Positions 2,906 through 48,200 of a stretch of DNA of 64,000 nt are shown piece after piece (positions within the stretch are counted from its first letter, which is position 1; the number at the start of each line of letters is the position of its first letter). Source of the DNA: Malacoraja senta (lineage: Eukaryota); NCBI GenBank assembly GCA_038087875.1, contig CM075978.1:174840001-174904000 (forward strand), in the 5' to 3' direction. The notes beneath the pieces were generated by a model. That model ran no database searches. It was not told the DNA's origin and saw only the letters and a list, made by a program, of their open reading frames with translations. Both the position numbers and the translations under genes were made by a program.

Positions 2906-3013
2906 GTTTACTTCTCTTGATGTGTCGACACACCATCGTAATGATAAACAGAAGAATAAATATAATTCCACCGGTTGCGCATCCACAAATAAGAAAATAG
3001 GTCGAATTATTGT
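2906..3013 (-). CDS. Gene A transmembrane exon (DNNSTYFLICGCATGGIIFILLFIITMVCRHIKRSK)
   Basis: Acceptor tcttttattttacag|, donor AAAC|gtgagc, 108 bp, phase 1-1. Hydrophobic stretch with no charged residue, followed by a basic stop-transfer. Confidence 0.85.
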
Positions 3014-3124
3014 CTGTAAAATAAAAGAACGAAAAACATATAACTGAAATTAACTGCCAGGTCCAGAACAAAGATTAATTGTACTGATATTTAAGTTAAA
3101 TATTTTACGAATATTCGCAAATAT

Positions 3125-5715: not shown

Positions 5716-6021
5716 CTGTTTTGGAATCCGGAACATGATACGTTGTAGTCAGTGGAGTAGGAAGAGTGAAGTGCGCCACTTGGCAAGTATAGACCGACCC
5801 GCCCTGCAGTGTCCTTGTTTCCTTTAAATGACTGGAAACTTCATATAATCCATTCATAGTCAGTTTTACCGTTGTATCTATGTCCACGAAAATCTCAATA
5901 CCATTTCGGTACCAAGTAAGGTTAAGTGACTCCGGGTAAAATTCATCCGCTTTACACAAGAGATTCAATGTGGTGGAGTTTTGATCAGGCAGTTTGGAGA
6001 TTCTGAGCTGAGCTGGTGGAA
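5716..6021 (-). CDS. Gene A Ig C1-set exon
   Basis: Acceptor tttacatttgcag|, donor ACAG|gtgacg, 306 bp, phase 1-1. C1 motifs LLCKADEFYPESLNLTW, NGLYEVSSHL and YTCQVAH. Confidence 0.92.
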
Positions 6022-6189
6022 CTGCAAATGTAAAGCAAAAATGTATTTGTGATCCGGAAAACAACTACACGAGCATAACTATTTTGTACAATACTGGTCG
6101 ACGACCTCATAATTACACAGTTATGGGAACGTTCAGGATTAGCATAATTTCGGCTGTTTTTTCGGATATCAACAACATAAATCGTAGGT

Positions 6190-7410
6190 AGACAAAAATG
6201 CTGGAGAAACTCAACGGGTGAGGCAGCATCTATGAAGCGAAGGAATAGGCGACGTTTCGGGTCCAGACCCTTCTTCAAACTGATGTGGGGGTGGGGGGCG
6301 GGAAGAAGAAAGGAAGTGGCAGATACAGAGGCTGTGGGAGAGCTGGGAAACGGAGGGGAAGAGGGAGAAAGCAAGGAATACCTGAAATTGGAGAAGTCAA
6401 CTTTCATACCGATGGGGTGTAAACTACCCAGGCGAAATATGAGATGCTGCTCCTCCAATTTGCGGTGGGACACACTCTGACCATGGAGGGGGCCCAGACA
6501 GAAAGGTCGGATTCGGAATGGGAGGGGCAGTTGCAGTGCTGATCAGGTTGGTTAATGCGAACTGAGTGGAGGTGGAGGGCGAAGCGATCGCCAAGCCTGC
6601 GATTGGCCTCACCGATGTAAAGCAATTGAAACATGGAACAGCGGATGAAATAGATGAAGTTGGAGGAGGTGCAGGTGAACCTCTGCCTCACCTGGAAAGA
6701 CTGCTTTGGTCCTTGGATGGAGTTGGGGGGGGGGGGAGGTAAAGCGACAAGTGTAGCATTTCCTGCAGTTGGAAGGGAGAGTTCCAGGGGATGGGGTGGG
6801 AAGGGTGGGAAGGGACGAATTGACCAGGGATTACGGAGGGAACGGTCGCTGCGGAAAGCCAAAAGGGGAGAAGATGGGAAGATGTGGCCATTGGTGGGAT
6901 TCCATTGGAGGTGGCGAAAATATCAGAGGATTATCTGTTGTAAGTGTCGGCTGGTTAGGTCGAAGGTGAGGACAAGGGGGGCTCTGTCCTTGTTATGAGT
7001 GGGGGGGGTGAGTGAGGGAGGATCTACGGGATATGGGGGAGACCCTGGTGAGAGCCTCATCTATAATTGAAGATGGGAACCCCCATTTCCTAAAGAATGA
7101 GGACATCTCCGATGCCCTGGTTTGGAACACTTCATCCTGGGTGCAGATGCGGCGTACACGGAGGAATTAGGAGTAGGGGATAGAGTCCTGACATAAAGCA
7201 GGTGGGAAGAAGTGTAGTCCAGATAGCCATGGGAGTCAGTGGGTTTGTAGTAGGTGTCGGTCAGTAGTCCGTTGCCTGCGATGGAGATAGTGAGGTCTAG
7301 AAACAGTAGGGAGATGTCGGAAATTGTCCAGGTGAATTTGAGTGCCGGGTGGAAGTTGGTGGTGAAATTGATGAAGTCAGTGAGTTCTCCATGGGTGCAG
7401 GAGGTAGCAC
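6190..7410 (-). mobile_element. Penelope-like retroelement fragment (RT C-terminus + GIY-YIG) in the gene A V-C1 intron
   Basis: ORF track shows NFHPALKFTWTISD..FLDL..YYKPTDSHGYLDY (PLE RT thumb) and IYFIRC..LLYIGEANRRLGDRF..HL (GIY-YIG). Confidence 0.85.
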
Positions 7411-8316: not shown

Positions 8317-8637
8317 CGAAGACTTTGATTCTGGAGCCAGATCCATTCACAATTGCGCTTCCCTGGATTCCCACTCCGCAGTAATAGACTCCAGCATCAT
8401 CTGCATGGATATTCAATAGATGCAAGGAAGCTCCACCTTGTTTAAAACGAACAAATATCTTCCTACTGTCAGAGGCTGTTTGCAGAAAGTTCTGTTCGCC
8501 AAGTTTCCACCAATAAAATTCCACAGGTTGACTATTGTGCGATAGTCCAATAATGCAATAGAGAGTGATGTTTGAATATAAGATCACGTGTTTGCTCGTC
8601 GGAGATTGATCGACTTGGTAGTGAGCATCAACGGCAA
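8317..8637 (-). CDS. Gene A germline-joined VJ-type Ig V exon (NKp30-like)
   Basis: Acceptor ttcttctgctacag|, donor TTCG|gtatgt, 321 bp, phase 1-1. Reads QVDQSP..NITLYC..FYWW..DAGVYYC-11aa-GSGSRIKV. The J-like GxG strand lies inside the exon. Confidence 0.92.
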
Positions 8638-12600: not shown

Positions 12601-14483
12601 CAGTGTCATTAAAAAACACACTCACAATTATATTCCTCATATTATTTTTATATAATATAATTATACTTAATTATATATGATTACAGTCATATTTACAAGT
12701 TATATATATATATATAGGCATAATAATATATAGTTTAAATGGACTGCAACACGGAAATAGGCTGCCTATGGTGTAATATGGGCATTGGCCACTAGATGGC
12801 GCTTACTTTCCCGATCTCATTTTCTAATTAGTTTAATTAATTAATGTGCAACTTTTGGCACTGACGAGTTATGACATCCTTCTCAATTACATTTCATCTA
12901 AATCTGTGGAAAATATCATGTAGTTCTGTGACGTGGGTCATGAAAACCGATTTCTAGACACATTTTTGATGCTCGGCCCATAGCCTACTAGCACAATGTG
13001 TCTTTTTTATAAAGCAGCATTTGCTTCTAGCCATAGCCGATTAGGCGGAAACGGAACCAGATAACGTTTTAAGTCCCACATCTTTCATTGCACTAGGAAA
13101 GAGTGTTTCTATCGATGGAGGATAAGCTGGAGGACTAGTACAAAGAACAAAGGGAAACAACTCTGATAGAATAAACCCGTCTTTAAGGTTGCGGTTAGCA
13201 TCAGTTATGCGTCTTTGTCTATGAAGCATGTTGCTAATAATGAGGCTCTGAGACGTATCCAGTAGGCTATGGCATACCAAAAGAGAATGAAAAGTGATGA
13301 GAGGCAGAAATGGGCATTTATGATACACACTGAACTAAAGTCTCAATTACTTGTTGAAGAGGTCTGCAATATGCTTAGATGATTGAGCGTTCTTATAACA
13401 GTTTCATTTGGATTTGGATGGGGAAACAGAATAGTCAGTGGGAGAGGGACGCAACCGGATGCTCAGGGTTTCTCTGAAAAGTCATCAGACAATCTAGTTT
13501 CTGTTCTCCAATGCAGAGGAGACCGATTAGGCTGGTTCAGGAGCAGGACCTCTGCGACAGTGTCATTAAAAAACACACTCACAATTATATTCCTCATATT
13601 ATTTTTATATAATATAATTATACTTAATTATATATGATTACAGTCATATTTACAAGTTATATATATATATATAGGCATAATAATATATAGTTTAAATGGA
13701 CTGCAACACGGAAATAGGCTGCCTATGGTGTAATATGGGCATTGGCCACTAGATGGCGCTTACTTTCCCGATCTCATTTTCTAATTAGTTTAATTAATTA
13801 ATGTGCAACTTTTGGCACTGACGAGTTATGACATCCTTCTCAATTACATTTCATCTAAATCTGTGGAAAATATCATGTAGTTCTGTGACGTGGGTCATGA
13901 AAACCGATTTCTAGACACATTTTTGATGCTCGGCCCATAGCCTACTAGCACAATGTGTCTTTTTTATAAAGCAGCATTTGCTTCTAGCCATAGCCGATTA
14001 GGCGGAAACGGAACCAGATAACGTTTTAAGTCCCACATCTTTCATTGCACTAGGAAAGAGTGTTTCTATCGATGGAGGATAAGCTGGAGGACTAGTACAA
14101 AGAACAAAGGGAAACAACTCTGATAGAATAAACCCGTCTTTAAGGTTGCGGTTAGCATCAGTTATGCGTCTTTGTCTATGAAGCATGTTGCTAATAATGA
14201 GGCTCTGAGACGTATCCAGTAGGCTATGGCATACCAAAAGAGAATGAAAAGTGATGAGAGGCAGAAATGGGCATTTATGATACACACTGAACTAAAGTCT
14301 CAATTACTTGTTGAAGAGGTCTGCAATATGCTTTGATGATTGAGCGTTCTTATAACAGTTTCATTTGGATTTGGATGGGGAAACAGAATAGTCAGTGGGA
14401 GAGGGACGCAACCGGATGCTCAGGGTTTCTCTGAAAAGTCATCAGACAATCTAGTTTCTGTTCTCCAATGCAGAGGAGACCGA
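12568..14483. repeat. Near-identical 957-bp tandem duplication (2 copies)
   Basis: Identical ORFs at 13041-13328 and 13998-14285 (offset 957). The unit starts attaggctggttcaggagcagg and ends gaggagaccgatt. Confidence 0.95.
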
Positions 14484-19472: not shown

Positions 19473-19672
19473 NNNNNNNNNNNNNNNNNNNNNNNNNNNN
19501 NNNNNNNNNNNNNNNNNNNNNNNNNNNNNNNNNNNNNNNNNNNNNNNNNNNNNNNNNNNNNNNNNNNNNNNNNNNNNNNNNNNNNNNNNNNNNNNNNNNN
19601 NNNNNNNNNNNNNNNNNNNNNNNNNNNNNNNNNNNNNNNNNNNNNNNNNNNNNNNNNNNNNNNNNNNNNNNN
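19473..19672. other. Assembly gap (200 N)
   Basis: Run of N. Confidence 1.
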
Positions 19673-20814: not shown

Positions 20815-21100
20815 CGACACAGTGGTGCAGCAGGTAAATGCGGAGTTTGAGGCATGTTCTCCCTGTGACCACGTGGGTTTCATCCGTTGCTCCAGTATAC
20901 TCCCACATCCCAAGAAGTGCAGATTTGTGGGTTATTTGACCTCTGTGAATGCCCCCACTGTGAATTGAGTGGATGCGAGTAGGTTGATTAATGTGATTAA
21001 CGTGAATTGAGTAGGTTAACGTAGAGCTAGTGTGAACGGATGATCGATGGCCGGCGTGGAATCGATGGGTTAAAAGGCCTGTTTCTCTGCTGTATCTTTC
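20815..21100 (+). mobile_element. HE1-like SINE
   Basis: ttctccctgtgaccacgtgggtttcatcc..ctcccacatcccaag..ggcctgtttctctgctgtatc. Confidence 0.55.
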
Positions 21101-21414
21101 AACCAATGGAACACATTTTTATCACAAAATTCACAGATGTTTAGATCTTGACCAATAGGTACAATTAAATGCTGGCTGCTATGTGATGATGTGTCGAAAT
21201 AAATCATAGAATTCAAAATATGTGATCATCAACCATTAGTCACATGCAAAATTGAATATCTTCGTTAAGTCGGTGCTGTTTATTATAATCATAATTTTTG
21301 CCCGCGCAAATGTTTCATTTCCTTTATTATCAAGAGAATCGTGTAATTACCGATACTATTATATTATAATATTATACTGGGATGATAATGTTTAAAAATG
21401 GATGAGAAACATAC

Positions 21415-21516
21415 CTTTATATATAATTGTCATCACGATGATAACGATGAACATTAAAATTAATACTGCACCTCGGATACTTCCAGCGATTAGAGAAGCT
21501 GATAAACCATCGACAG
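21415..21516 (-). CDS. Gene B transmembrane exon with Arg (AVDGLSASLIAGSIRGAVLILMFIVIIVMTIIYKG)
   Basis: Acceptor cctcccacag|, donor AAAG|gtatgt, 102 bp, phase 1-1. Not in the ORF track; translated by hand from the reverse complement. Confidence 0.82.
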
Positions 21517-21894
21517 CTGTGGGAGGTTACACCGATGACCAAATGGTTATATTTAATTAAGTTATTTCAAAGTAGACTTTACGGAAAACAAAGCAAGATA
21601 TTTCAAATGTTCACTCAATGGATTTCACCAGAACTGCGTGGAATGCGGCAAAGAGCCGGCAATTTCGATTTACGGCGCGATTACGAGTGAAATATGTAGA
21701 TCTTAGGTGAACATTGTGGGATATTAACCGTTAGGAAACACAAAATTGTGGAACATAATACATTAATTTGGATATATTCTGTTCACCAAATCTTGAAGGA
21801 GATGTTAATGTTACTGACGCTGGTCAGGAGTGAATCATTACAGACGTCTTCTCCCCACCTACAGTCCCCAACTAATGCAAGAGCCAACAAGTTA

Positions 21895-22860
21895 GTTCTC
21901 ATAGATAGATTGAAAATGCTGGCGTAACTTAGCGGGTCAGGCAGCATCTTTGGAGAAAATGGAGAGGTGACGTTTTGTGTCGGGACTATTCTTCAGACTG
22001 ATTGTGGGGTCGGGGGGGGGGGGGGGGGTGGGGGCGGAAGCAAGAAAAAAACAGGATAAATCGGGACTAGCACGATATGGCCCCACGCAGGGAGGTTCCC
22101 TGATAGGCCGACGTTATCCCAAGAGGGATATATTGTTGCGAACTGTGGGACTGGAAAATCGATATTTAGAGGAGGAAGGGGGCAAATGGGAGGGTGCGGG
22201 GGGGGGGGGGCGGATGGGGGCGCTGGCTTGTATGCTATACAAGTGAAATGTGAGGTGCTGTTCGTCGAATTTGCTTTCGCCACTCTGTGCAAGGCAGGTC
22301 CTCGGACAGAAAGGTCAGTGTAGGAATGAAAAGGCGAATTAAAATACTTAGCTACTGGGAAATCCAGTAGTCGGAGCATGCTCAGCTAAATGGCCGCAGA
22401 ATCTACACCTCTTCACACTATTGTACAGGACCCCGCATCCAGACCATCGGATGCAGTAGATAAGATTAGAGAAGGTGCATGTGAACTACTGTCCAAACTG
22501 GAAAGAATGTCGGAGTCCGTGCATAGAGGCGAGGAAGGAGGTACAGGGACAGGTGTTACATCTCCTGCAGTTGTAGAGAAGAGTACATCGGGTTGGGGTG
22601 GTGTGGGTTTAAAGGGATGAATGAACCATAGTTGTGGAGGAACAGTCTGCAAAAGGCGGAAAAGCATGGAGATGTAAATATGTAATTAATAATGGGATCA
22701 GGTTGGACGCGACGAAAATATTCGAAGATGATGTTTAGGATTGCGGTGGCTGGTGGGGTGAACGGAGAGAGAGAGAGAGAGAAAGGAAGCATAGAGCGGT
22801 ATCAGAGATAATCCAGGTGAATTTGAGGGCAGGGTGGAAATTAGTGGTGAAGTTGATTTC
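21895..22860 (-). mobile_element. Penelope-like fragment
   Basis: Same terminus and GIY-YIG region (FNSPFHSYTDLSV) as the 6190-7410 copy. Confidence 0.7.
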
Positions 22861-23189
22861 TACACGGGTGTAGGATGTAGCGCTAATTGTCGAGGACTGG
22901 CCGTTCTGTATCGCAAAGGAGGTCGGGGGGGGGGGGGTGGTGAAAACACGACAGGGGTGAGGGCTGGAGTCAGGGGCGAGAAGAGGTGCAGAATCAGGCT
23001 CGGGCGTGGGGGCCAGAGGGCTTCAGAGAGGAGGGGTTGGGAGGAGCAGTGCGTGGGCGGGCGGGGGAGGGTTATTAAGGTCATAAGGAATAGTAGAATT
23101 AGGCAATTCGGCCCATCATGTCTACTCCGCCATTAAAACATGGCTGATCTATCTCTCCCTCCTAACCCCATTCTCCTGCCTTCTGCCCA

Positions 23190-23850
23190 TGACGTCTGAC
23201 ATCTGTAGTAGGAGTAGAGTGGTAAAGATAATTTTCTCTACGAACAATCTCCTGTGTCTAGAGGAATTTGTCCTCACCTTCAACATCTTCTCTTTTGACT
23301 CCTCTCACTTTCTCCAAGTTAAAGTTGCAGCTGGACACTCACATCAGCCACAGCTACTGGTTACCATTTTGTTGATTACATGGTGCTGTGCTTGTTCAAA
23401 ACATGCGCTGTCGTTACCCCCGAACTCTTTCTCGAATACATCGACAACTACGCTGGAGCTACTTCCTGCACTCGAGCAGAACATATGGCCTTTATTAATG
23501 ACACTACTAACTTCCACCCTGCTCTCATACTTTCGTGAACGTGACCCTCCCCCCCCTCCCCCCCTTCCCCCCTTCCCCCCACCATCCCTCCTCCCACCCC
23601 CACCCACCTCCCATAATCTTATCTACTGCATCCAGTGTTCCTGATGCGAGCTACCGTACAATAACGAGACAAAGGTAGATTCTGCGACCGTTTAGCTGAA
23701 AACACGCACGAGGTCCGCCAAGGCCTATTGGATTTCCCGGTTGCTAACTATTTAGAATCCCTATCCCATTCGCACACCGACCTTTCTGTTCTGGGCATCC
23801 TGCGTTACCAGAGTGAGGCCACAGACAAACTGGAGGAGTAGTACTTCATA
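23190..23850 (+). mobile_element. Penelope-like fragment
   Basis: NLIYCIQCS..ETK..CDR.AE motif and RT-thumb remnant aacttccaccctgctctc. Confidence 0.7.
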
Positions 23851-24424
23851 TTTCGGTATTTGCGCAGATTATTTTTAGGTAGTCTCTGTGCCTGAGTTGC
23901 AATTAGTTACGAATTTCAGCCATGAACGAACAAAAAGAAAACCTTCACCGAGTTAATGGTGCAGCAATAGTACTTATCGATTCACAGCTCCAGGTATCCC
24001 AGCTCAGGCCTGGCTTCGGGAACTGTCTGCAAGGACATTGCACATTCTCTGAGATTTTACCAAGGAACTGCTTGGTGAGTTAATTGATTATTTTTATATT
24101 ATTCCTCGGGAAGGTGTGATGTTTGAGGGGGCATCAGAGTGGACTTGTAGATCACTTGAAAGGGAACGAGCTACAGGTGCGCGATCGATTGCGGGAACGG
24201 TATTGATGGAATCTTCTGGGAGGCAACATAGACTGGATGGACTGTACAGCGTCCGTCTACGCTGGCAGAAAATAGGAAAATTGCACAAGTTGTAGGAAAA
24301 TAAATTTGCTGCAGAAAATACGGTCTTAAAAATCCTCACATTTTATTTTTACTATTAATATTATTATTCAGTGGACTATCCATTATACTATGTTATATTC
24401 ATTATATCCATTATACTACGTTAC

Positions 24425-24727
24425 CTTCATGAGGAACCGTGTAGTTGGCTGTTGCTGGAGTTAGCATAGAACGGTGAATAATTTTACATGTGTAAACGGT
24501 TCCTTCTTTGACTGCCCGTTTCTCCTTTAAAGAGCTGATAACTTCATACAATCCGTCTGCCGTTGAATTTTGTTCATGCCGAAATCCAGATTGGATGACG
24601 GAACCATTTCTATGCCAGGTGAGATTAAATTCTTTCGGGTGAAACGCAGCCGTTCTGCACTGGATTTTCAGGAAATGAGTCGCAGCATTTCTAGATCGAA
24701 CAGATACAATCTTCAGAGGAGAAGGGA
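24425..24727 (-). CDS. Gene B Ig C1-set exon, open frame but acceptor is TG instead of AG
   Basis: Hand translation without stops: VPSPLKIV..KIQCRTAAFHPKEFNLTWHRNG..DGLYEVISSL..VYTCKIIH..NYTVPHE. Donor GAAG|gtaacg. A long pyrimidine tract ends ccttgctg| at the position homologous to the gene A acceptor. Confidence 0.85.
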
Positions 24728-25477
24728 CAGCAAGGTAAAGAGAAATGGAATTAAAAGAAAGGGGAAAATTCGATTACATCATCCAACAGCATTTGTTCCA
24801 ACGCTACTTAATTCCATCATAATTTTTAAATCGGGAGCCCAGATGAAGGTGTTCTTCAACGCAATTGACCCCCCCCCACCCTCCTTCCCTTGACATGCAT
24901 TCCCTTGACATTTAATTTAAGAAAAGAGCACTAATTTGCACACTTGTTTCTTGTGCTAACATGCGCGAATCAACTTTCAAGTTTCAACTCTTCAAACGCA
25001 CAGTACTGTTGTGAATATTTCAACTTCCCAATATAATCAGTCATAAACAGTTGCAGACTTTGGCTTACAGAGAATGCTATCACTAAAATTTCTTGCTTTT
25101 CTAATTCGGCGCAAGAAATCTAATTTATATTTCAATTAATTTGTGCAAGTAAAAACCTCGCTCTTTCAATTCACAGGATTATATGTTGATAACATTATCA
25201 TTAGGAAAACATCAGGAGGATCCCCGCCTCGGCGTTCAGTGTCAAATTGAATCCGTTGTATTTATTCATCTTACACTCACTACCTTCAATATACTTCAAC
25301 TCAAATATCATTGCTGTCATGCCCTCTGACCTATATTTTCAAACGAATCAATCTAGAATAATTTCCCAACGTTTTGCACATTTGTATTCTGGATTAAAGA
25401 CTTTTGTGAAGCAAAATCCAAATTTGAGCTGCAACTAAAGTACCTAAGAAGGAACTGCAGATGCTGGATAATCGAAG

Positions 25478-25625
25478 GTATACAAAAGTGCTGGAGAAAC
25501 TCAGCAGATGCAGCAGCATCTATGGAGCGAAGGGAATAGGCAATGTTTCGGCCCGATACGTTGCCTATTTCCTTCACTCCATAGATGCTGCTGCACCCGC
25601 TGAGTTTCTCCAGCACTTTTGTCTA
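25478..25625. repeat. Penelope-terminus-derived inverted repeat (hairpin) 24 nt from the gene B V-exon donor
   Basis: ~72-bp arms: acaaaagtgctggagaaactcagc..taggcaa / ttgccta..gctgagtttctccagcactttt. Confidence 0.9.
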
Positions 25626-25649
25626 GCAACTAAAGTACCGTTCGCTCAC

Positions 25650-25961
25650 CATATACGATCAGTTGCTCTCCTGTTCCCTCCCCAACCGTTCGGCCCGCTT
25701 GTTTTGCAAGACAATAGTATGTTCCGGCGTCCGAGACCGTGACATTCAGCAGGTGAAGGTAGGCGCCTCCTGCCCTTATGATGAAGATTTTCCTGCTATC
25801 TTCTTTCAGGAAGCCTTTATTTCCATCTTTCCACCAGAAAACCTTTAGGTTTGACAGATTTACATTGAAGGGGAAGGAACACCGACAGGTAATGTTTATG
25901 CCACTGATCACCGTCTTCTGAACAACATTCGATATCGTCTTGCCCGACCTGTTCTCAGCAG
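25650..25961 (-). CDS. Gene B germline-joined VJ-type Ig V exon
   Basis: Acceptor ctattgacag|, donor TATG|gtgagc, 312 bp, phase 1-1. Reads NITCRC..VFWW..DAGTYYC-11aa-GTGEQLIV. Confidence 0.9.
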
Positions 25962-26249
25962 CTGTCAATAGATGGTGCACAATCCAGTTTAGTCATTGAT
26001 ATACAGCAATGGAAATTTAACACTGCTGGCAAATATCTTATTGCACGCAGACCAAATATATACGATGAATTGAACCGAATTATTATGCCCGCTTTTTGTG
26101 TCCTCGTAAAGGTTTCGTAAATTGCACTCCTTTCCAGAACTCATACAACAGCAATGACTTTATGGACAATTCAGCATGACATTATAAGGTACAACTATCA
26201 TATGAATTTGAAGACCCATAAATAAAAAGCAATAGAAGCCCTAGTTTAC

Positions 26250-26304
26250 CCGCATTCAAAATTCCAAGGAAATACATCGTCCAAGGTGACACTTTCAGAA
26301 ACAT
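26250..26304 (-). CDS. Gene B leader exon (MFLKVSPWTMYFLGILNA)
   Basis: ATG at 26304. The donor GCGG|gtaaac is phase 1 and has the same donor hexamer as the gene A leader. Confidence 0.7.
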
Positions 26305-27774
26305 ATCGACGACGAAGCAGGCCTGACTGGGAAAGATGAAGGTCTGGTTAATAATCGTCACGGTATCTTCTACACTGACTCCTAATCACATCGGTCACCG
26401 CATGACATGGCCGAGAAATGCGTTGCTTTTAATATAGGGCTTGCTGAGTGCCTGAAGGCGGAAATTGAGTCAGGAAATAGAAGGCTGTTTTATTTGAGGA
26501 CATCAAACAGTGCGCACATCGATCATTTCTCGATGTGCGCAATGAGAGGATCTAATTAAAATAAGATGCCAAATAAGAAAATTGCCCCCCCCCCCCCCAC
26601 CTCGAGAATTTGATAAGGCCATGAATGAACCAATCTTGGTTTTAAACGCCTCTTTTCTGTTCTTTTCCCCTTTAACGACCCTCAAAGCTCATTTATTTCC
26701 TCAGATTTTGACTTGTATACATTCAATAACGCCCACCCAGATCCTTCTCTTTTCTGTTTTGTATGTGTTCCACCCTTTAGTTTCCTTAAATTTCGTTCTA
26801 CAAACCCTAATTAAAAAGTACGTTCCCGCAATCAACCTGACCGCCCACAACCCGGAGGACTTATATATTTCAATATGATCACCTCTTGTTTTATATAGAC
26901 CATCACGACATAACTATAGATTTAAGTAGTTATGCCTGGGTACCTTGCTGTGGCATTCCGCCATTCACTGTTCGTCAATCTGGCAATCATCCATTCATCC
27001 CATTGCCCTTTTCAGATAATTAACCACCATATCATCCATTTCCTTATAAATTATATCGATAACAAGTTCGCGTGTTCCTGTCTTGATCAGATATCTTTTA
27101 TAGGGAATACTATAAAGTGCTTCAGGATATCCATATACAGGTTCTCAGAGTTCCCTTTTATTCACATTGCTCCCTCCATCGTGAAATAATGCTAGCAAAT
27201 ATATCAAAATATGTGTGTTTTTCATAAACCCACTTGGACTCTTGATAGACTTATTGTGTCATCAACGTCCCGCTACTCTTTAATCAGTAATGGATTTGAA
27301 CACTTTCCCACTAGCAGTTGACAGAATAACTTGCCAATAGTTTCCTCCTATTTGTGCCCCTCGTCTTCACTTTCATGACATTTACAGTTTCCCCAGATCT
27401 ATTCAAAATTCATGGAGTTTTATTTCAGTACAAAATAGAACCCGCCACACCTAGAGTCACCCCATTGGCTCGAAGTTAAACCACCGAAAACTTTCTTCTG
27501 TCGCCATAGCATCTCCTTAGTTATTATTGTTTGATGTTCCTAGTTACCTCTACCGTGAAAACCAGATACTAAGCAATTATTTATAATCCTTGGCACATTT
27601 TCCCCCATGAATAATATAATACACATATTCGTTATGGGGCAAAATGTTTAATTTAGTTACTCTCTTCCTTGTTATCTATGTGAAGAATATCTTGCTCTCT
27701 GCTTCAATGTTATTTATTGCATTACGCACAGGCTCCGTCTCGTTCTCGTTATTTTATTTTACCTCTCCGATCTT

Positions 27775-28045: not shown

Positions 28046-28386
28046 CCCTAAACTTGTTGGAAGTCGACATAATCCTGTTGGCAGTCCACATACGAAGACA
28101 ATGCCACAGTGCCATTGGATAATTCGTGCTCTATTGTCAACGCTGTTGGGATAGCAAATTGTGAAGTCTGCGACTCCATGTCATTTCTGTTGAAACAGCG
28201 ATAATATTTTCCCACTAAATCGAATGAGGCGATCTTGAAGATTTGAATCGATTCGTGAGACCGGTTTCGTCCTCGCCATTTCCATAGTTCTAATTAAGAT
28301 GTCTGAATTACAGGTATTATGAGCAGGCCGTATATATAGCTGAACATAATGTGGAGGAAAGAACTGCAGTTGCTGGTTTAAATCGA

Positions 28387-28567
28387 AGGTAGACTCAACA
28401 TGCTAGAGTAACTCAGCGGGACAGGCAGCATCTCTGGAACGAAGGAATGGGTGACGTTTCGGGTCGAAGAAGGTCTGAAGAAGGGTGTCGACCCGAAACG
28501 TCACCCATTCCTTCGCTCCAGAGATGCTGAATATCCCGCTGAGTTACTCCAGCATTTTGCGTCTACC
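28387..28567. repeat. Penelope-terminus-derived inverted repeat
   Basis: ~80-bp arms: aggtagac..gagtaactcagcgggac..gtgacgtttcgggtcga / tcgacccgaaacgtcac..gagttactcc..gtctacct. Confidence 0.9.
28472..28505 (+). ncRNA. Candidate minimal hammerhead ribozyme core (Penelope-associated)
   Basis: ggt-CTGAAGA-a-GGGT(gtcg)ACCC-GAAA-C-GTC-acc: core CUGANGA and GAAA, stem II, palindromic ACGU helix III, GUC site, 3-bp stem I. One extra A before stem II deviates from the canonical core. Confidence 0.55.
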
Positions 28568-28705
28568 TATTGTTGGACAGATTTTTTAAATATCAGTTAC
28601 GTAAATAATATGTACAAATTGACTATTCATGCTAACGCGTGTTGTTTACATTCGAAATATATTAGTCTCCGTGATATTTATTTTATGATCCTTCATAAGG
28701 AGGGT

Positions 28706-30173
28706 AGCTAATGTAACCCCACTTTTTAAAAAGGGAGGGAGAGAGAAAACGGGGAATTACAGACTAGTTAGTCTAACATTGGTAGTGGGGAAACTGCTAG
28801 AGTCAGTTATTAAAGATGGGATAGCAGCACATTTGGAAAGTGGTGAAATCATTGGACAAAGTCAGCATGGATTTATGAAAGGTAAATCATGTCTGACGAA
28901 TCTTATAGAATTATTCGAGGATGTAACTAGTAGAGTGGATAAGGGAGAACCAGTGAATGTGTTATATCTGGACTTTCAGAAGGCTTTCGACAAGGTCCCA
29001 CATAAGAGATTAGTATACGAACTTAAAGCACAAGGTATTGGGGGTTCAGTATTGATGTGGGTAGAGAACTGGCTGGCAGACAGGAAGCAAAGAGTAGGAG
29101 TTAACGGGTCCTTTTCAGAATGGCAGGCAGTGACTAGTGGGGTACCGCAAGGCTCAGTGCTGGAACCCCAGCTATTTACAATATATATTAATGATTTGGA
29201 CGAGGGAATTGAATGCAACATCTCCAGGTTTGCGGATGACACGAAGCTGGGGGGGGGGGGGCAGTGTTAGCTGTGAGGAAGATGCTAGGAGGCTGCAAGA
29301 TGACTTGAATAGGCTGGGTGAGTGGGCAATTGCATGGCAAATGCAGTATAATGTGGATACATGTGAGGTTATCCACTTTCGTGGCAAGAACAGGAAAGTA
29401 GACTATTATCTGAATGGTGGCCGATTAGGAAAAGCGGAGATGCAACGAGACCTGGTTGTCATGGTACACCAGTCATTGAAAGTAGGCATGCAGGTGCAGC
29501 AGGCAGTGAAGAAAGCGAATGGTATGTTAGCATTCATAGCAAAAGGATTTGAGTATAGGAACATGGAGGTACTACTGCAGTTGTACAGGGTCTTGGTGAG
29601 ACCACACCTGGAGTATTACGTACAGTTTTGGTCTCCTAATCCGAGAAAGGACATTCGTGCCATAGAGGGAGTACAGAGAAGGTTCACCAGACTGATTCCT
29701 AGGATGTCAGGACTTTCATATGAAGAAAGACTGGATAGACTCGGCTTGTACTCGCTAGAATTTAGAAGATTGAGAGGGGATCTTATAGAAACTTACACAA
29801 TTCTTAAGGGATTGGACAGGCTAGATGCAGGAAGATTGTTCCCGATGTTGGGGAAGTCCAGGACAAGGGGTCACAGTTTAAGGTTAAAGGGGAAATCTTT
29901 TTGGACTGAGATGAGAAAAAAAAAATTTACACAGAGAGTGGTGAAGCTCTGGAATTCTCTGCCACAGAATGTAGTTGAGCCCAGTTCATTTGCTATGTTT
30001 AAGAGGGAGTTAGATGTGGCCCTTGTGGCTGAAGGGATCAGGGGTTATGGAGAGAAAGCAGGTACAGGATACTGAGTTGGATGATCAGCCATGATCATAT
30101 TGAATGGCGGTGCAGGCTCGAAGGGCCGAATGGCCTACTCCTGCACCTATTTTCTATGTTTCTATGTTTCTAT
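28706..30173 (+). mobile_element. 5-prime-truncated CR1 LINE (RT, frameshifted) with (TTCTATGT)n tail
   Basis: [42 protein letters not shown]. Frameshift in a G-run near 29250. Confidence 0.93.
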
Positions 30174-31035: not shown

Positions 31036-31355
31036 AGTATATGATAGGTTCTTGACCGGTTTCATTTAAAACCGTTTCACCCGCAAGTTTGTGGAATGTG
31101 GAAGTACATTCTACTGTCAGCACGCTCACATGCAGCAGCAACAACGGTTGCGCCCCTTACCCGTAATGTTCTGCTATTTCTTCTCAGGAAGTTCTTATTT
31201 CCGTCTCTTTGCCAGTGCACCGTTACGTTAGGTGGATTAAGATCGAAGAGGAAGGGCAATAGGCGTATAAAAGTTTCTGATTCAAGTTGTTTTTGCTGAC
31301 TTTAATGTAGTTGTAAGATTTTTATTGGTTCTTGTATCTTTCTCATTTACAACTT
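31036..31355 (-). pseudogene. Decayed VJ exon most similar to gene B V
   Basis: VTVHWQRDGNKNFLRRNSR aligns with LKVFWWKDGNKGFLKEDSR of gene B. Both canonical Cys are lost, with frameshifts and stops. A remnant GETVLNETGQEPIIY|gtgagg matches GRTVGEGTGEQLIVY|gtgagc. Confidence 0.75.
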
Positions 31356-37286: not shown

Positions 37287-40200
37287 CTAAGGTACTGGAA
37301 GAGAGAAGGTGAGTGACGGTGAGAAAGGGAGGGAAACATGGAATGAAAACGTCCCCGGGTGTTGTACCTCTTGTGAACAGGTTCACCCACTTAGAAGCTG
37401 AGGGGAAAGAAGTTATCACACTGAGCGGTGGACTGGCTTGCGAAGCAAAAAGGGCTGTTGAGTCAAAACCAAAGCGGCCAACGTCAGGCAACGCCATTGT
37501 AGTTGGAGACTCCATTGTGAGAGGTACGGAGAGGGATTTCTGCGGTAATAGACGGGATTCGAGAATGGCGTGCTGCCTTCCTGGTGCCAGGATCCAGGAT
37601 GTCACGGACAGAGTGCAGAAAATCCTCCAGGGCGAAGGTGAACAGCCGAAAGTGCAGTCGGCACAAACGATGTCGGAAAGAAGGGGATGAATATTCTGCA
37701 GCGTGACTTTAGAGAGCTCGGAAAAATGCTGAAAAGCAGGACCTCCAGGGATGTTATGTCCGGTTTGCTTCCAGTTCCTCGTGCTGGCGAGAGCAGGAAC
37801 AGGGAGATACGGGACCTGAATGTGTGGCTGAGGAACTGGTGCAGGGGGCAGGGATTTAGATTCTTAGATGACTGGGAACTGTTTTGGAGTAAGGGGGAAC
37901 TGTACAAAAGGGACGGATTGCATCTTAACAGGTGGGGGACCAGCATTCTGGCAGGCAGGTTTGCCACTGCTACACGGGTGGTTTTAAACTGAATAAGGGG
38001 GGTGGGGTGTCAAATGGTATAGTCGAGGACGGAGTTAAAGAGAAAAAGTGTAAAGGGAAGGTTAATGACCCCAGAATTAACGGGAAAGGAAGCTCACAAA
38101 GGGATAGGAGAGTATGGCCAAGTGTAATAGGGATCGATGTGAAAGGTGAGATGCGTAAGGAATTAAAAGTATTGAATATGAATGCGCGAAGTATAAGAAG
38201 TAAAGTAGATGAGCTTGAAGCTCAGTTAGAGGTTGGTAGATATGACATTGTGGGGATTACTGAGACGTGGCTGCAGGAGGATCGGGCCTGGGAACTTAAT
38301 ATTCAGGGTTATACATCCTATAAAAAGGACAGGCAGGTGGGCAGAGGAGGGGTGGGGTAGCTCTGCTGGTGAGGGATGGAATTCCGACCCTTGCGAGGGA
38401 AGATATAGGGACTGACGAGGTAGCGTCACTGTGGATTGAGTTGAGGAATTGCAAAGGCAAGAAGACACTAATTGGTGTTATTTACAGACCCCCAAATAGT
38501 AGCCCGGATGCAGGGTGTAAGTTGCAGCAGGAGTTAAAACTGGCATGTAACAAAGGGGGTTTTCAATATGCAGGTAGACTGGGAAAATCAGGTTGGTTCA
38601 GGACCCCAAGAAATAAAATTTGTAGAATGCCTCCGAAATGGATTCTTAGAGCAGCTTGTAATGGAGCCGACCAGAGAAAAGGCAATTCTGGATTTAGTGT
38701 TGTCCAATGAACCAGACATGATAAGACAATTCGAGGTAAAGGAACCGCTCGGAGGTAGTGATCATAATATGATTAGTTTTAATTTGCAATTTGAGAAGGA
38801 GAAGGTTAAATCGGAAGTGGCAGTGATGCAGTTGAACATAGGGGACTATGACGGCATGAGAGGGGAGCTGGCCAAAGTAGATTGGAAAGGGATCCTTGCA
38901 GGAATGACGGTGGAACAGCAATGGCAGGAATTTCTGGGGATAATCCGGAAGACGCAGGATCATTTCATTCCAAAAAGGAAGAAATATTCTAAGGGGAGTA
39001 GGAGGCAACCGTGGCTGACAAGAGAAGTTAGGGATAGAATAAAACTAAAATAAAAGATGTATAACACAGCAAAGAGTAGCCGGAAGCCAGAGGATTGTGA
39101 AACTTTCATAGGACAACAGAAGGAAACAAAACGGGCAATACGGACTGAAAAGATGAAGTATGAAGGGAAGCTGGCCAGGAATATAAAGAAGGACAGTAAA
39201 AGCTTCTTTGGATATGTTAAGGGAAAAAGAGTAGCAAAGTCAAATGTGGGTCCCTTGAAGGCAGACACGGGTGAAATTATTATGGGCAACAAGGAAATGG
39301 CAGAAGAGTTGAATAGGTACTTCGGATCTGTCTTCACTAAGGAAGACACAAACAATCTCCCAGATGTAATGGAGGACAGAGGATCTAAGGGGGTAGAGGA
39401 ACTGAAAGAAATTTTCATTAGGCGGAAAATAGTATTGGGTAGGCTAATGGGACTGAAGGATGATAAATCCCCTGGGCCTGATGGTCTGCATCCCAGGGTC
39501 CTCAGGGAGGTGGCTCTAGAAATAGTGGACGCATTGGTGATCAATTTCCAATGTTCAATAGATTCAGGATCAGTTCCTGTGGATTGGAGGATAGCTAATG
39601 TTATCCCACTTTTCAATAAAGGAGCGAGAGAGAAAACGGGGAATTACAGACCAGTTAGCCTGAATTCGGTGGTGGGAAAGACAATTATTTAAGAGGTAAT
39701 AATGGGGCATTTAGATAGCAGTAAAATGATTAGTCCAAGTCAACATGGATTTAGGAAAGGGAAATCATGCTTGACTAATCTTGTGGAATTTTTTGACGAT
39801 GTGACGAGTAAAATGGATGAAGGGGTAGACTTTCAGAAAGCCTTTGATAAGGTCCCGCACGGACGACTGGTGACTAAAATTAGAGCACATGGTATTGGGG
39901 GTACGGTGTTGACATGGATAGAAAATTGGTTGGCAGAGAGGAAGCAAAGAGTAGGAGTGAACGGGTCCTTTTCAGAATGGCAGGCAGTGGCGAGTGGAGT
40001 GCCGCAAGGCTCGGTGTTGGGGCCGCAACTGTTTACCATATATATTAATGATTTGGAAGAGGGAATTAGGAGCAACACTAGCAAGTTTACGGATGACACA
40101 AACCTGGGTGGCAGAGTGAACTGTGAAAAGGATGTTAGGAGGGTGCAGGGTGACCTGGACAGGTTGAGTGAGTGGGCAGGTGCGTGGCAGATGCAGTATA

Positions 40201-41027
40201 ATATAGATAAATGTGAGGTTATCCACTTTGGCGGCAATAACAAGGGGGCAGATTATTATCTCAATGGGGTTAGCTTAGGCAAGGGGGAGGTACAGCGAGA
40301 TCTGGGTGTCCTTGTACACCGGTTACTGAAAGTTGGCGTGCAGGTACAGCAGGCAGTGAAGAAAGCTAATGGAATGTTGGCCTTCATAACAAGAGGATTT
40401 CAGTATAGGATTAAAGAGGTTCTTCTGCAGTTGTAGTGGGCTCTGGTGATACCACATCTGGAGTATTGTGTACAGTTTTGGTCTCCAAATTTGAGGAAGG
40501 ACATCCTTGTGATTGAGGCAGTGCAGCGTAGGTTCACGAGATTGATCCCTGGGATGGCAGGACTGTCAGATGAGGAAAGATTGAAAAGACTAGGCTTGTA
40601 TTCACTGGAGTTTAGAAGGATGGGGGGGGGGGTCTTATAGAAACATATACAATTATAAAAGTACTGGACAAGCTAGATGCAGGAAAAATGTTCCCAATGT
40701 TGGGCGAGTCCAGAACCAGGGGCCACAGTTTTAGAATAAAAGGGAGGTCATTTAAGACTGAGGTGAGAAAACACCTTTTCACCCAGAGAGTTGTGAATTT
40801 ATGGAATTCCATGCCACAGAGGGCAGTGGAGGCCAAATGACTGGATGGATTTAAGAGAGAGTTAGATAGAGCTCTAGGGGCTAGTGCAGTCAAGGGATAT
40901 GGGGAGAAGGCAGGCACGGGTTATTGATTGGGACGATCAGCCATGATCACAATGAATGGCGGTGCTGGCTCGAAGGGCCGAATGGCCTCCTCCTGCACCT
41001 ATTTTCTATGTTTCTATGTTTCTATGT
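37287..41027 (+). mobile_element. Long CR1 LINE, ORF1 esterase + APE-RT ORF2, inactivated
   Basis: VVGDSIVRG..LPGARI..DGLHLN (SGNH); NARSI..ITETWL, YRPPN, SDH (APE); KFTDD region. Multiple stops and a (TTCTATGT)n tail. Confidence 0.93.
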
Positions 41028-42244
41028 TTGGTATCCACTTAAGCTACAATCGAACTATGTATCTTGACCCTTCTGCTCTACAACCGTTTTGCCGTTTACT
41101 ATTAAGGTCCTGCCCACATTTCACTTCCCAAAATATATAACCTCACACTTATCGTCATTAAACTCGTTAACCATTCATCAGCCCACTTGCCCAAGTGAAC
41201 AAGATCCTGCTGTAACCGTTGATAACCATTTTCGCTATCTACAATATTACCCAATTAACAGTCATCTGCAATCTTACTAATCCGGCTTTGTATGTTCTCA
41301 TCCAAATCGTTGATATACAGTAAGCCACAAACAGTAATAGGCCCAGCATCGATCCTGGAGGCACACCACTATCAGAGCCCTCCACTCCAAACCCTCTGAA
41401 GAAGGGTCTCGACCCAAAACGTCGCCCATTCCTTCTCTCCAGAGATGCTGTCTGTCCCGCTGAGTTACTTCAGCATTTTGTGTCCATCTTTGCTCTAAAC
41501 CAGCAGCTCCAGTTCCTACGTACACAATTGCCACCCTGCAATCTTCCGGCACCTCACCCATATTTGATGATGACTCATATATCTCAGCCAGGTCACCTGC
41601 AGTTTCTTCACTAGCTTCCCGCGGTGCCCTCGGATAAATCTGATCAGGCCCGGAGGATTTCTCTACCTTTTACACGTTAGTACGTTGAGCACCTCTATCG
41701 CAATACAGACTGCCCTCAAGACACTTCCATTCATTGCCCCCAAGTTCCCAGATCTTCATGTTTTTCATGCAAGGAAAAGCCTAGGAGCTATAGATCTGTG
41801 CCTGACATCTATGGCAGATATGTTACTGGAGAGTATTCTGAGATAAGATATATATGCAGCTTTATGAACAATGGCCGATAGGTGACATTGAACCTGTGTA
41901 TTTACGAAGGTAATATAGCCTCACATATGACCAAGAGTTTTGAAGAAGCAACTTAGAAGGTTGAAGATGGCAATGACAGAGAAAATGTTTTCATGGAAGT
42001 TTCTGCATGCCAAGTTACCCTGGAAAGCTAGATGGCGTGAGAGCTAGCTTAATGGGCAGAAATTCTGATTTATGGTAGGCAGTAGTTACAAAAATCAGAT
42101 TGAAGGCTGTGACTCTTGCTGTGTTCATGGATCGGGGCTGGGTCCATTGCTGTTTGTGTTTTATATCAACAATTTGGATGAGAAGAAACAAGGCATGATA
42201 ATAATGTCTGCAGATGCCATTAATGGAGGTGGTATCGGAGACAG

Positions 42245-42550: not shown

Positions 42551-43949
42551 ATACTAACCAGTGAAGACGGTCATCAAAAATTACAGCAGGATCTTGATCA
42601 GTTGGGCACATGGATTGAGGGATAGCCAATGAAGCTTAATGGAAGCAATTGCGAGTTGTTGCATTTTGGGAGTTCACCCCAGGGCAGGACATTTATAGTG
42701 AAGCCAGGGAAATGTTATAGGGCAGAGGGAACTAGGCATACGGATACATAGTTACCTGTACATGGCGTCATAGGTAGATGGGTTAGTAAGGAAAGCTTTT
42801 GGCACATTTTCATTCAGTTGTCAAGGTATTCAGTTCATAATTTGTGTTATGGTGAAGTCGTAGGAGACGATGGTGAGATCACATTTTGAATATTGTTTTC
42901 ACTTTCGGTCACCCTGCTTCAGGAAGGATGTCATTATGCTGGAAATGGTGAATAGAGAAGTTTACCAGATGTTATCAAGACTGGAGGGCCTGAGCAATGG
43001 GGTAAGGTTGGGCGGACTAGGACCACAGGAGACCGAAGGTGATATTCTGGGCGTGTATAACATCATGAGAGAAAAAGATAGGTTTAAATGCTCCGTCATT
43101 TAGCCAGGGTGGGTGAATCAAGAAGCAGAGGCCAAAGGTTTATAGTGAGAGGGAAAGCTTTAATAGGAACCTGAGGGGGAACTTTTTCACTCAGAGGGAG
43201 GTGGGTGTATGAAGCGAGCTACCAGAGGAGATAGTTGGGGCAGGTATAATAACAGCATTTAAATGACAAGTAGATAGGTACTTGGATAGAATAGTGCAAA
43301 GGAATTTTGGCAAAACGCGGGTACATTTGGCGAGCTTCGATTAGCATCTTGGTCAACGTGGACCAATTGGGCCGAAGGGCTTATTTCCCGTGCTCTATGA
43401 TTCTATACCATTATGACAGGCCTGTTCTCGTGCTGCACGACTCTGTGAACCTTCCCAAGTCGCAAAGAAAGCTATATTTCCAACCACGTTTTTTCTGTCA
43501 TGATATCCCCGCAATCTCACGATGGTCTGGCGAATCTTCATCGTAGCCCTATTAAAGAAATTGTTCACTTTTGGAGTAAATGAACTAAACTGTAACAAAT
43601 TAGGCCGGATGTGGTCTCAACTAGGCCGTAGGTTGTTGTAAGATGACAAGTGCATTCTGGTAGTGAAATTCTATAGCAATAACAAATTGGAGGAACAGCA
43701 TCTGATATCTGGGCAGCTTGCACCCCAGTGGTATGAATATTAATTTAACTCACTTCGGGTAGCCCCGGCATTCCCTCTCTCTCTATCCCTCTCCCACCCA
43801 AGTCGCAACAGCTTCTCATTTACACCCTACAAACTGCTTACAATGGCCTGTTTCCTTTATCATCGTTACTTGTTTTGCAGAGCTTTCATTCATTGTTCTT
43901 TACCTCTCCACATCACCGTCTATATCTCTCGTTTCCCTTATCCCTAACC

Positions 43950-44220
43950 AGTCTGCAGAAAGGTCTCGACCCGAAACGTCACCTATTCCTTCTCTTCAGA
44001 GGTGCTGCCCGTCCCGCTGAGTTACTCCAGCTTTTTGTGTTTAAGAAACAACTGCTGATGCTGGAAAAATCGAAGGTAGACAAAAATGCTGGACAAACTC
44101 AGCGGGTGAGGCAGCATCTATGGAGAGAAGGAACAGGCAACGTTTCGGGTCGAGACCCTTATTCCTTCGCTGCATAGATGCTGCGTCACCCGCTGAGTTT
44201 CTCCGGCATTTTTGTCTACC
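43950..44220. repeat. Penelope termini, including an inverted-repeat hairpin at 44075-44220
   Basis: ggtagacaaaaatgctgg..gcagcatcta / tagatgctgc..ccggcatttttgtctacc. Confidence 0.8.
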
Positions 44221-45284: not shown

Positions 45285-48200
45285 ATGAGGGCCAGGGCAG
45301 TTTACTGTTCTGGATGTCAGATGTGGGAGTTCATGGAGTCCGATACCCCTCCAGACGTCCACATCTGTGCCAGGTGCGTCGAGATGGGGCTATTAAGGGA
45401 CCGTGTTAGGAACCTGGTGCAGCAGCTCGATGACCTCTGTCTGATCAGGGAGAGTGAGGAGGTCATATAAAGGAGTTATAGGGAGGTGGGCACTCCAAGA
45501 CCACGGGAGGCAGACACGTGGGTCACGGTTAGGAAGGGCAAGGGGTAGAGGCAGGGACTAGTGAGTACCCCGGTGGCCGTACACCTTGAAAATAAGTACT
45601 CCTGTTTGAGTACTGTTGGGGGGGACAGCTTTCCTGGGGGTAGCGACAGCGGCCGGGCCTCCGGCACAGAGACCGGCCCTATTGCTCAGAAGGGTAGGGA
45701 AAAGAAGAGGAGGGCAATAGTAATAGGGGACTCTATAGTTAGGGGGTCGGATAGGCGATTCTGTGGACGCAGTCATAAGACCCGGATGGTAGTTTGCCTC
45801 CCTGGTGCAAGGGTCAGGGATGTGTCTGAACGCGTCCAAGATATCCTGAAATCGGAGGAGAGGAGCAGAGGTCATGGTACATATAGGTTCCAATGACATA
45901 GGCAGAAAAAGAGAAGAGGTCCTGAAAGGAGAATTTAGGGAGTTGGGAGGAGAGTTAAGGAGAAGGACCGCAAAGGTAACAATCTCAGGATTACTACCTG
46001 TGCCACGCAACAGTGAGAGTAGGAATGGAATGAGGTGGAGAATAAATGCGTGGCTAAGGAACTGGTGCAGCGGGCAGGGATTCAAAATTCTGGATCATTG
46101 GGACCTCTTTTGGGGAAGGTGTGACCTGTACAGAAAGGACGAGTTGCACTTGAACCGGAGGGGGACCAATATCTTGGCGGGGAGATTTGCAAAGGCTACT
46201 GGGGAGACTTTCAACTGGAACGGTTGGGGGGAGGGACTCAAATAGAGAAAGCTAGTAGACAATGCGGGAGGCAGGAGGCAGAGAAGGGAAGCATTCGGAC
46301 CCAAAATGTAGGGGAGAAAGAAGAAAAAGATAATAAACAGAGAATAAGTGGTGGTGGGTTTCTTAAATGTGTATATTTTAATGCTAGGAGCATTGTAAGA
46401 AAGGTGGATGAGCTTAGAGCCTGGATTGACACCTGGAAGTATGATGTTCTGGCGATCAGTGAAACATGGTTGCAGGAGCGGTGTGATTGGAAACAAAATA
46501 TTCCAGGATTTCGTTGCTTCAGGGGTGATAGAATTGGAGGGGCAAGAGGTGGGGGTGTTGCATTGCTTGTCAAGGAAGATATTACAGCAGTGCTTTGGCA
46601 GGATAGATTAGAGAGCTCGTCTAGGGAGGCTATTTGGGTGGAACTGAGAAATGGGAAAGGTGTAGCAACACTTATAGGGGTGTATTATAGACCACCTAAT
46701 GGGGTGCGAGAATTGGAAGAGCAAATATGTAAGGAGATAGCAGATATTAGTAGTAAGCACAAGGTAGTAATTGTGGGAGATTTCAATTTTCCACACATAG
46801 ACTGGGAAACACATTCTGTAAAAGGGCTGGATGGTTTGGAGTTTGTAAAATGTGTGCAGGATAGTTTTTTGCAGCAATACATAGAGGTACCTACTAGAGA
46901 AGGGGCAGTGCTGGACCTCCTGTTAGGAAATGAGACACGGCAGGTGGCGGAGGTATGCGTTGGGGAGCACTTCGGGTCCAGTGATCACAATACCATTAGT
47001 TACAATATAATTATGGAGAGGGTCAGAACTGGACCTAGGGTTGAGATTTTTGATTGGAGAAAGGCTAACTTTGAGGAGATGAGAAAGGATTTAAAAGGAG
47101 TGAATTGGGACGTTGTTTTTATGGGAAGGATGTAGAAGAGAAATGGAGGACATTTAAAGGTGAAATTTTAAGAGTACAGAATCTTTATGTCCCTGTTCGG
47201 TTGAAAGGAAATAGTAAAAATTGGAAAGAGGCATGGTTTTCAAGGGAAATTGGACACTTGGTTCGGAATAAGAGAGAGATCTACAATAATTATAGGCAGT
47301 ATGGAGTAAATGAGGTGCTTGAGGAGTATACAGAATGTAAAAAGAATATTAAGAAAGAAATTAGAAAGTTAAAATAAGATATGAGGTTGCTTTGGCAAGT
47401 AAGGTGAAAGTAAATCCAAAGGGTTTCTACAGCTATATTAATAGCAAAAGGATAACAAGGAATAAAATTGTTCCATTAGAGAGTCAGAATGGACAGCTAT
47501 CTGCAGAGCCAAAAGAGATGGGGGAGATATTGAACAATTTCTTTTCTTCGGTATTCACCAAGGAGAAGGATATTGAATTATGTGAGGCAAGGGAAACAAG
47601 CAGAGTAGCAATGGAAACTATGAGATTCAAAGAAGAGGAGGTGTGGACACTTTTGAAAAATATGAAAACAGATAAGTCTCCAGGTCCTGACAGGATATTC
47701 CCTCGCACATTGAGGGAAGTTAGTGTAGAAATAGCAGGGGCTATGACAGAAATATTTCAAATGTCATTAGAAACGGGAATAGTGCCGGAGAATTGGCGTA
47801 CTGCGCATGTTGTTCCGTTGTTTAAAAAGGGTTCTAATTATAGACCTGTTAGTTTGACGTCAGTGGTCGGCAAATTAATGGAAAGGATACTTAGAGATAA
47901 TATATATAAGCATCTGCATAAGCAGGGTCTGATTAGGAACAGTCAACATGGATTTGTGCCTGGAAGGTCATGTTTGACTAATCTTGAATTTTTCGAAGAG
48001 GTTACTAGGGAAATTGATGAGGGTAAAGCAGTGGATGTTGTCTATATGGACTTCAGTAAGGCCTTTGACAAGGTTCCTCATGGAAGGTTGGTTAAGAAGA
48101 TTCAATTGTTGGGTATTAATGGTGGAGTAGCAAGATGGATTCAACAGTGGCTGAATGGGAGATGCCAGAGAATAATGGTGGATGGTTGTTTGTCAGGTTG

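Follow-up and report, generated by a model that had tools for sequence, protein, structure and literature searches.

Loss of the canonical C1 splice acceptor in a V-C1-TM(Arg) receptor gene of the skate Malacoraja senta

In a stretch of 64,000 nucleotides of the Malacoraja senta genome (assembly GCA_038087875.1, contig CM075978.1, positions 174,840,001 to 174,904,000; hereafter the window), a receptor gene on the minus strand, gene B, carries a fully open C1 exon that is preceded by TG where a splice acceptor should read AG. What does such a gene still make? A preliminary description of this DNA proposed a C1-less receptor, a null allele or an assembly error, and ortholog and sequence analysis leaves this as the correct set of outcomes. 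We address here where the lost acceptor lies, how conserved the gene is, how constrained its C1 exon has been, and which outcome best accounts for the locus.

Four coding exons can be defined in gene B, for leader, VJ, C1 and TM segments, all of them in phase 1 (Table 1). The germline-joined V contains a J-like G-x-G-T motif and is 69% identical to the V of the sawfish Pristis pectinata; the C1 exon is 65% identical to its Pristis counterpart. As first described, C1 is open throughout: it has no stop and no frameshift, retains both Cys, the Trp and an N-G-S sequon, and keeps the motifs FxPKEFNLTWH, GLYEVISSL, TVYTC and PATANYTVP. Its PDB matches are Ig CL (light-chain constant), SIRP-gamma, SIRP-alpha and B7-H6 C1 domains. 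The Arg-Gly of the TM segment is shared with Pristis, Hemitrygon and Mobula (IVRG). Six other splice signals read in the gene are canonical, and the C1 acceptor alone is TG. Gene B has a single C1 exon between V and TM; no second C1-like open reading frame was found from 24425 to 21516. A search for cytoplasmic exons gave no convincing match to the tails of the orthologs; an assembly gap lies downstream at 19473-19672.

Table 1. Positions within the window of the exons and splice elements of gene B and of the paralogous gene A (a slash marks an exon boundary; coordinates are plus-strand, motifs are read on the strand given).
Feature	Position	Strand	Description
Leader exon, gene B	26250..26304	(-)	MFLKVSPWTMYFLGILNA + G; donor G/gtaaac; N-terminus matches sawfish, stingray and devil-ray MFLKRS(L/F)WT(M/I)Y...
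VJ exon, gene B	25650..25961	(-)	Acceptor gacag/CT, donor G/gtgagc, phase 1 on both sides; Ig/V-set
C1-set exon, gene B	24425..24730	(-)	306 nt, phase 1 to 1, donor G/gtaacg, fully open; Pfam C1-set E 1.1e-9
TM exon, gene B	21415..21516	(-)	Acceptor cccacag/CT, donor AAAG/gtatgt, phase 1 to 1; Arg codon CGA at 21475-21473
Orthologous C1 acceptor dinucleotide	24731..24732	(-)	TG in skate; sawfish (L001) and sevengill shark (L002) have AG, as aligned with the window without gaps from a right-hand anchor
Candidate acceptor of the preliminary description	24728..24729	(-)	Second TG, 3 nt downstream; use would give Y-V-PSPLKIV, whereas every ortholog has one residue more
First AG past the AG-free zone (candidate cryptic acceptor, within C1 coding sequence)	24711..24712	(-)	ctgaag/ATT; 20 nt from the orthologous site, 17 nt from the TG of the preliminary description
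Two branch-point-like motifs	24736..24751	(-)	ttaAt (A at 24751), tttAc (A at 24736); within an 80-85% pyrimidine tract; consensus match only
C1 exon, paralog gene A	5716..6021	(-)	Canonical acceptor tttgcag/TT; comparison with gene B
VJ exon, paralog gene A	8317..8637	(-)	Comparison with gene B

Homologs were sought in two steps: the V exon was run against 1.84 billion representatives in a profile-free scan, and two word-indexed searches came after it. These identified clear orthologs and relatives, among batoids in Pristis pectinata (P0155), Hemitrygon akajei (P0156) and Mobula hypostoma (P0157), and among sharks in models from Chiloscyllium, Scyliorhinus, Heptranchias and Heterodontus. The three batoid proteins match gene B over their whole length, with leader, junction and the R-G of the TM segment all aligned, and nine shark and ray proteins align over its leader, V, C1 and TM. 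NCBI labels the orthologs SIRP-alpha-like or B7H6-like. More broadly, the cartilaginous-fish VJ-C1-TM receptors predicted as 'tyrosine-protein phosphatase non-receptor type substrate 1-like' or 'natural cytotoxicity triggering receptor 3 ligand 1-like' (e.g., P0155) have the exon plan of gene B, with all exons in phase 1, and share with it the junction A-V-P-S-P-L-K-I-V and the TM R-G. They differ in the acceptor: orthologs with DNA have tttag/ before C1 whereas skate gene B has ccttg/, so its set of canonical acceptors is incomplete. Judged by these alignments, gene B is the skate ortholog of a conserved cartilaginous-fish V-C1-TM(Arg) receptor, predicted to be of the activating type. Other members of the family combine an uncharged TM segment with tyrosine-motif tails (P0014, P0154), and still others carry a basic TM residue.

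The homologs recovered for the sawfish ortholog included shark and ray models but no skate protein; this is weak evidence for a gene that predictors cannot model. The open-frame fragments of C1 had no match in a set of 5.8 billion proteins, and an exact look-up of four open reading frames around the acceptor, aimed at contigs of other individuals, found none of them in the collection searched.

The position of the lost acceptor cannot be taken from the neighboring paralog: the C1 domains of genes A and B share ~41% amino-acid identity, and a DNA alignment of the two genes finds repeats only, so that gene A is unable to place the site at the level of single bases. We therefore used genomic DNA of two orthologs, from Pristis pectinata (sawfish; L001) and Heptranchias (sevengill shark; L002). 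The Pristis intron ends in cgtttag/TTGCCCCC (cgtttag/TTGCC) and that of Heptranchias in ccatttag/TTGGCCCC (catttag/TTGGC). The minus strand of the window reads ctttaccttgctg/TCCCTTCTCCTCTGAAG/ATT from 24740 to 24708, and ...ttccatttctctttaccttgctgtcccttctcctctgaag/attgta... over this region. When the three sequences are anchored on the conserved CTGAAGATTGT, which requires no gaps, the AG of both orthologs falls on the TG at 24732-24731 of the skate, with tttag/TT facing ccttg/CT. The protein junction supports the same placement, as in nine of nine ortholog and paralog proteins two residues separate the Y/H that ends V from P-x-P-L-K-I. In Hemitrygon and Mobula these residues belong to A-V-P-S-P-L-K-I-V, the exact translation of skate G/CT GTC CCT TCT CCT CTG AAG ATT GTA. 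The changed base is thus a single substitution, A to T, at minus-strand position 24732; the first base of the exon also differs, being C in the skate and T in the orthologs.

The preliminary description had correctly recognized a one-base change from AG to TG and the absence of a canonical AG, but had placed the lesion 3 nt too far downstream, at 24729-24728, because the 'VP' of gene A was matched to the 'VP' of gene B. As both candidate dinucleotides are TG, the conclusion that the AG is missing holds despite this shift. A motif scan extends it: the minus strand is free of AG from 24804 to 24712, hence the C1 exon is without a canonical acceptor in any frame-compatible place. The two branch-point-like adenines lie 40 nt and 25 nt from G24711, the last base of the first AG that follows.

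What could be spliced from this arrangement is constrained by the reading frames. The V exon ends in phase 1 (G/gtgagc at 25650) and the TM exon begins in phase 1 (acag/CT at 21516), so that skipping of C1 would be in frame, as had been proposed, with a V-TM join of ...EQLIVY-A-VDGLSASLIAGSIR.... The TM Arg would stand 15 residues after the Y of this junction, one fewer than the 16 first counted. Splicing at the next AG inside the exon, in contrast, would shift the frame and yield ...IVY-DCICSI-stop, again in agreement with the preliminary description.

A C1-less form has a precedent in the annotation of a paralogous gene of the horn shark (Heterodontus francisci), for which isoforms XP_067906071 to 74 are listed. 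Isoform X4 (XP_067906074, P0043) joins V straight to TM, as ...VQLVVY-D-VIPTNQFSLIAG..., and isoform X2 (XP_067906072, P0154) carries C1 between the same two points; with the skip, the junction codon changes from A to D. At the level of the horn-shark annotation, skipping of C1 would therefore appear to be a natural option in the family of gene B.

We further compared four sequencing runs over positions 21000-26900. Contigs of X1, X5 and X7 extend through the introns with uniform coverage, which identifies these runs as DNA; X27, the only RNA run compared, comes from another species and has zero depth on all gene B exons. All sampled words of the VJ exon (100%) are present in X1. The X1 contig spans 24045-25472 with 12 differences from the window and the X5 contig 24418-24879 with 28, and among the 40 of 521 differences listed, none lies near 24729-24732.

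The same runs depart from the window at the TM segment. Contigs of X1, X5 and X7 all have GGA (Gly), at full depth, in place of the Arg codon, and four further differences in the 102-nt exon accompany it; X1 shows nine differences in 201 nt there, yet matches the V exon perfectly. The corresponding Pristis codon is CGG (Arg), which indicates that Arg is ancestral at this site. The two forms could represent alleles that have diverged, differences between species or a closely related paralog. If they are allelic, then the 'activating' residue of gene B is not fixed.

Constraint on the C1 exon, a comparison that the preliminary description had proposed, was estimated for skate gene B against Pristis by the method of Nei and Gojobori. 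For C1, dN is 0.225 and dS 0.471 (dN/dS 0.48), and for V, dN is 0.184 and dS 0.478 (dN/dS 0.38). We also counted lineage-unique replacements, polarized with six shark sequences, in the skate and in each of the other species. In C1 the counts of skate to other species are 15 to 6 for Pristis, 14 to 9 for Hemitrygon and 14 to 6 for Mobula; in V they are 13 to 7, 11 to 14 and 7 to 16, respectively. The excess of unique changes in skate C1 is borderline at best (chi-square near 3.9 for the Pristis pair), and any acceleration is at most mild. With dN/dS below 1 and the features of the domain kept, C1 is still under purifying selection overall, and selection appears to have acted on it through most of the skate lineage. 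The overall constraint, together with the borderline skate excess, suggests that the lesion is recent or that use of the exon has not been abolished.

Several known systems offer points of comparison. SIRPs likewise have an N-terminal V followed by C1-set sequence, and the C1 of gene B matches SIRP-gamma (E 3e-9) and SIRP-alpha (1e-8) in the PDB. However, SIRPs contain a V and two C1-set domains where gene B has one C1, and there is no sign of orthology to mammalian SIRPs; by its domain content, gene B is not a SIRP proper. The UrIg and UrIg2 genes of elasmobranchs resemble gene B in having a non-rearranging VJ exon followed by C1-type domains, but UrIg combines a V with three C domains, and in the UrIg2 of the nurse shark there are nine (PMC12227049). 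Three or more C domains thus stand against the single C1 and Arg-bearing TM segment of gene B.

In NKp30, the receptor to which gene B had been likened, a TM Arg, located at the outer end of the helix behind a short stalk, pairs with CD3-zeta or FcR-gamma and the TM exon ends in VYYQG; the gene is MHC-linked and its product binds B7H6. No MHC marker was identified in the window. The likeness concerns layout only, and only the hypothetical skipped product, which would have a single V(J), a short stalk and an Arg 15 residues after ...LIVY. This spacing does agree with NKp30, whose 15-residue stalk ends in Arg143 (PMC7409301), and to this extent the proposed resemblance stands. It does not extend further. 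The NKp30 ectodomain is a single V(J) with no C domain, whereas gene B has an intact C1-set domain between V and TM, used by all of its V-C1-TM orthologs. Among the best 60 PDB matches of the gene B V exon (phmmer) there is no NKp30 chain; titin, contactin, amphioxus IgVJ-C2, PD-L1 and others were found instead. Compared at this level, gene B is not NKp30.

Beyond gene B, the window holds further receptor sequences. Gene A has a candidate TM exon at 2847-3074 (-), in which RHIKRSKRE comes after an uncharged helix; gene A looks like the non-activating partner of the Arg-bearing gene B. At 31037-31253 (-) lies a decayed V-like exon related to the V of gene B, recovered as two tblastn pieces in different frames; it has lost part of the Cys/Trp pattern and probably represents a dead copy within this cluster. 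The third of the intact V exons, at 51763-52071 (+), has a J-like ...SNGTRIIVH end and a Pfam V-set match of 7.5e-12. LINE insertions follow it, no C1 exon was found downstream of it within the window, and its best 60 PDB matches include no NKp30 chain either.

The surroundings of these genes are rich in repeats. LINE-type reverse-transcriptase open frames of up to 613 codons lie between the receptor genes, at 28689-30072 (+), 39054-40433 (+), 45549-49203 (+) and 54669-58657 (-). Stretches such as 6181-6477, 25428-25739, 28412-28708, 41324-41611 and 43749-44174 translate to ...KKGLDPKR..LFL...AEFLQHF..., and near 6180-6300 and 28379-28569 lie copies, 78-88% identical, of the repeats at 25470-25625 and 21913-22021. 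Segments 21788-21984, 22970-23363 and 25334-25727 are very abundant repeats: in every DNA run their summed word depth reaches millions, and the RNA run has hundreds of reads on them. Two identical open frames of 97 codons, at 13044-13334 and 14001-14291 (-), lie 957 nt apart and point to a recent tandem duplication of ~1 kb.

The explanation that we favor, with roughly an even chance of being right, is that this copy of gene B is a young null or hypomorphic allele, spliced at the cryptic AG with some skipping of C1. The spliceosome would still meet a branch point with a long pyrimidine tract behind it, yet it would come upon its first AG 20 nt into the exon. The main product would then be spliced at 24712-24711 and run out of frame to the DCICSI-stop, and the premature stop, far upstream of the last junction, would expose the frameshifted transcripts to nonsense-mediated decay. 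Weak definition of the exon would let a fraction of transcripts skip the phase-symmetric C1, giving an in-frame V-TM(Arg) protein. This splice prediction is qualitative. The sequence comparisons establish the exon anatomy, the orthology, the missing AG and the reading frames, while both the splicing outcome and the age of the change are what we infer. Human mutations of AG to TG, as cited by Szafranski et al. 2007 (PMC2374985), always activated neighboring AGs, without splicing at the TG, and the decayed V exon within the same window also speaks for a null allele. Three observations weigh against it: the C1 exon without stop or frameshift, with its Cys, Trp and sequon kept, fits continued use equally well; the spacing between either TG and the AG would permit some normal product; and, given the C1-less isoform of the horn shark, skipping may yield a normal and functional protein in this family. 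If skipping were instead the main outcome, then gene B would encode a working activating V-TM(Arg) receptor of NKp30-like layout, with domain loss in progress. We consider this unlikely, although the frames permit the skip, the V exon and all other splice signals are intact, the Arg spacing is like that of NKp30 and the horn-shark paralog has a C1-less isoform. The cryptic site is favored over skipping by the strong pyrimidine tract and the AG that follows it 20 nt into the exon, an undecayed C1 with dN/dS below 1 argues against a long C1-free period, and the V is not NKp30-like by sequence. The idea of a snapshot of C1 loss is not shown, since C1 is still constrained and use of the neighboring AG, as in the human mutants, would here cause a frameshift.

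A slightly less probable account is that a TG, at 24732-24731 or 24729-24728, is itself used, licensed by the AG 17-20 nt downstream, so that V-C1-TM is still made, at least in part. Of the non-AG dinucleotides, TG alone is documented as a U2-type acceptor. It is known from 36 human genes, in all of them paired with an AG at a distance of at most 28 nt and behind a pyrimidine tract (Szafranski et al. 2007, PMC2374985). Gene B fits this pattern in its pyrimidine tract, in its distances of 20 and 17 nt and in its U2-type donor GTGAGC, and an intact and constrained C1 exon would be expected if TG were used. The known TG sites, however, are only alternative ones that adjoin a productive AG, mostly 3 nt apart, and the human mutants did not splice at TG; in gene B the partner AG is out of frame, so that at best part of the output would be productive and the TG is only a candidate. 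A U12-type or AT-AC intron is rejected, as the donor is GTGAGC. Rescue of the frame by pairing a downstream V donor, ACG/gtactt (phase 0), with the cryptic AG is also unlikely, since this would be a weak donor behind the consensus G/gtgagc and is absent in Pristis. We know of no case of constitutive splicing in which TG is the only 3' splice site, and we regard it as distinctly improbable that the TG is fixed in the skate lineage with the gene still working, be it as a C1-less V-TM(Arg) receptor or by constitutive TG splicing. Least probable is an assembly or sequencing error that hides a true AG: although run X1 does differ from the window at ~12 places within 24045-25472, the change is a plain substitution outside any homopolymer, its flanks read cleanly, and the first base of the exon departs from the orthologs as well.

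The gene B copy is hence best read as an early pseudogene in a birth-and-death receptor family, and not as a selected transition to an NKp30-like form. Loss of an acceptor is an ordinary kind of event in a receptor family with such fast turnover. For annotation, gene predictors will miss or mis-model gene B, and comparison with the orthologs fixes the true exon boundary. If the copy is only a young null allele, then it adds one more case in which the activating members of paired immune-receptor families turn over fast, and is of local interest only. If, on the other hand, the C1-less product is made and used, then a one-base change in a phase-symmetric exon would have converted a receptor with two domains into one with a single V, of the NKp30 type, which would bear on the relation of V-only to V-C1 receptors. 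Should the TG be fixed and the C1-less receptor work, the skate gene would represent a living intermediate of domain loss through one splice-site change, converging on the layout of NKp30.
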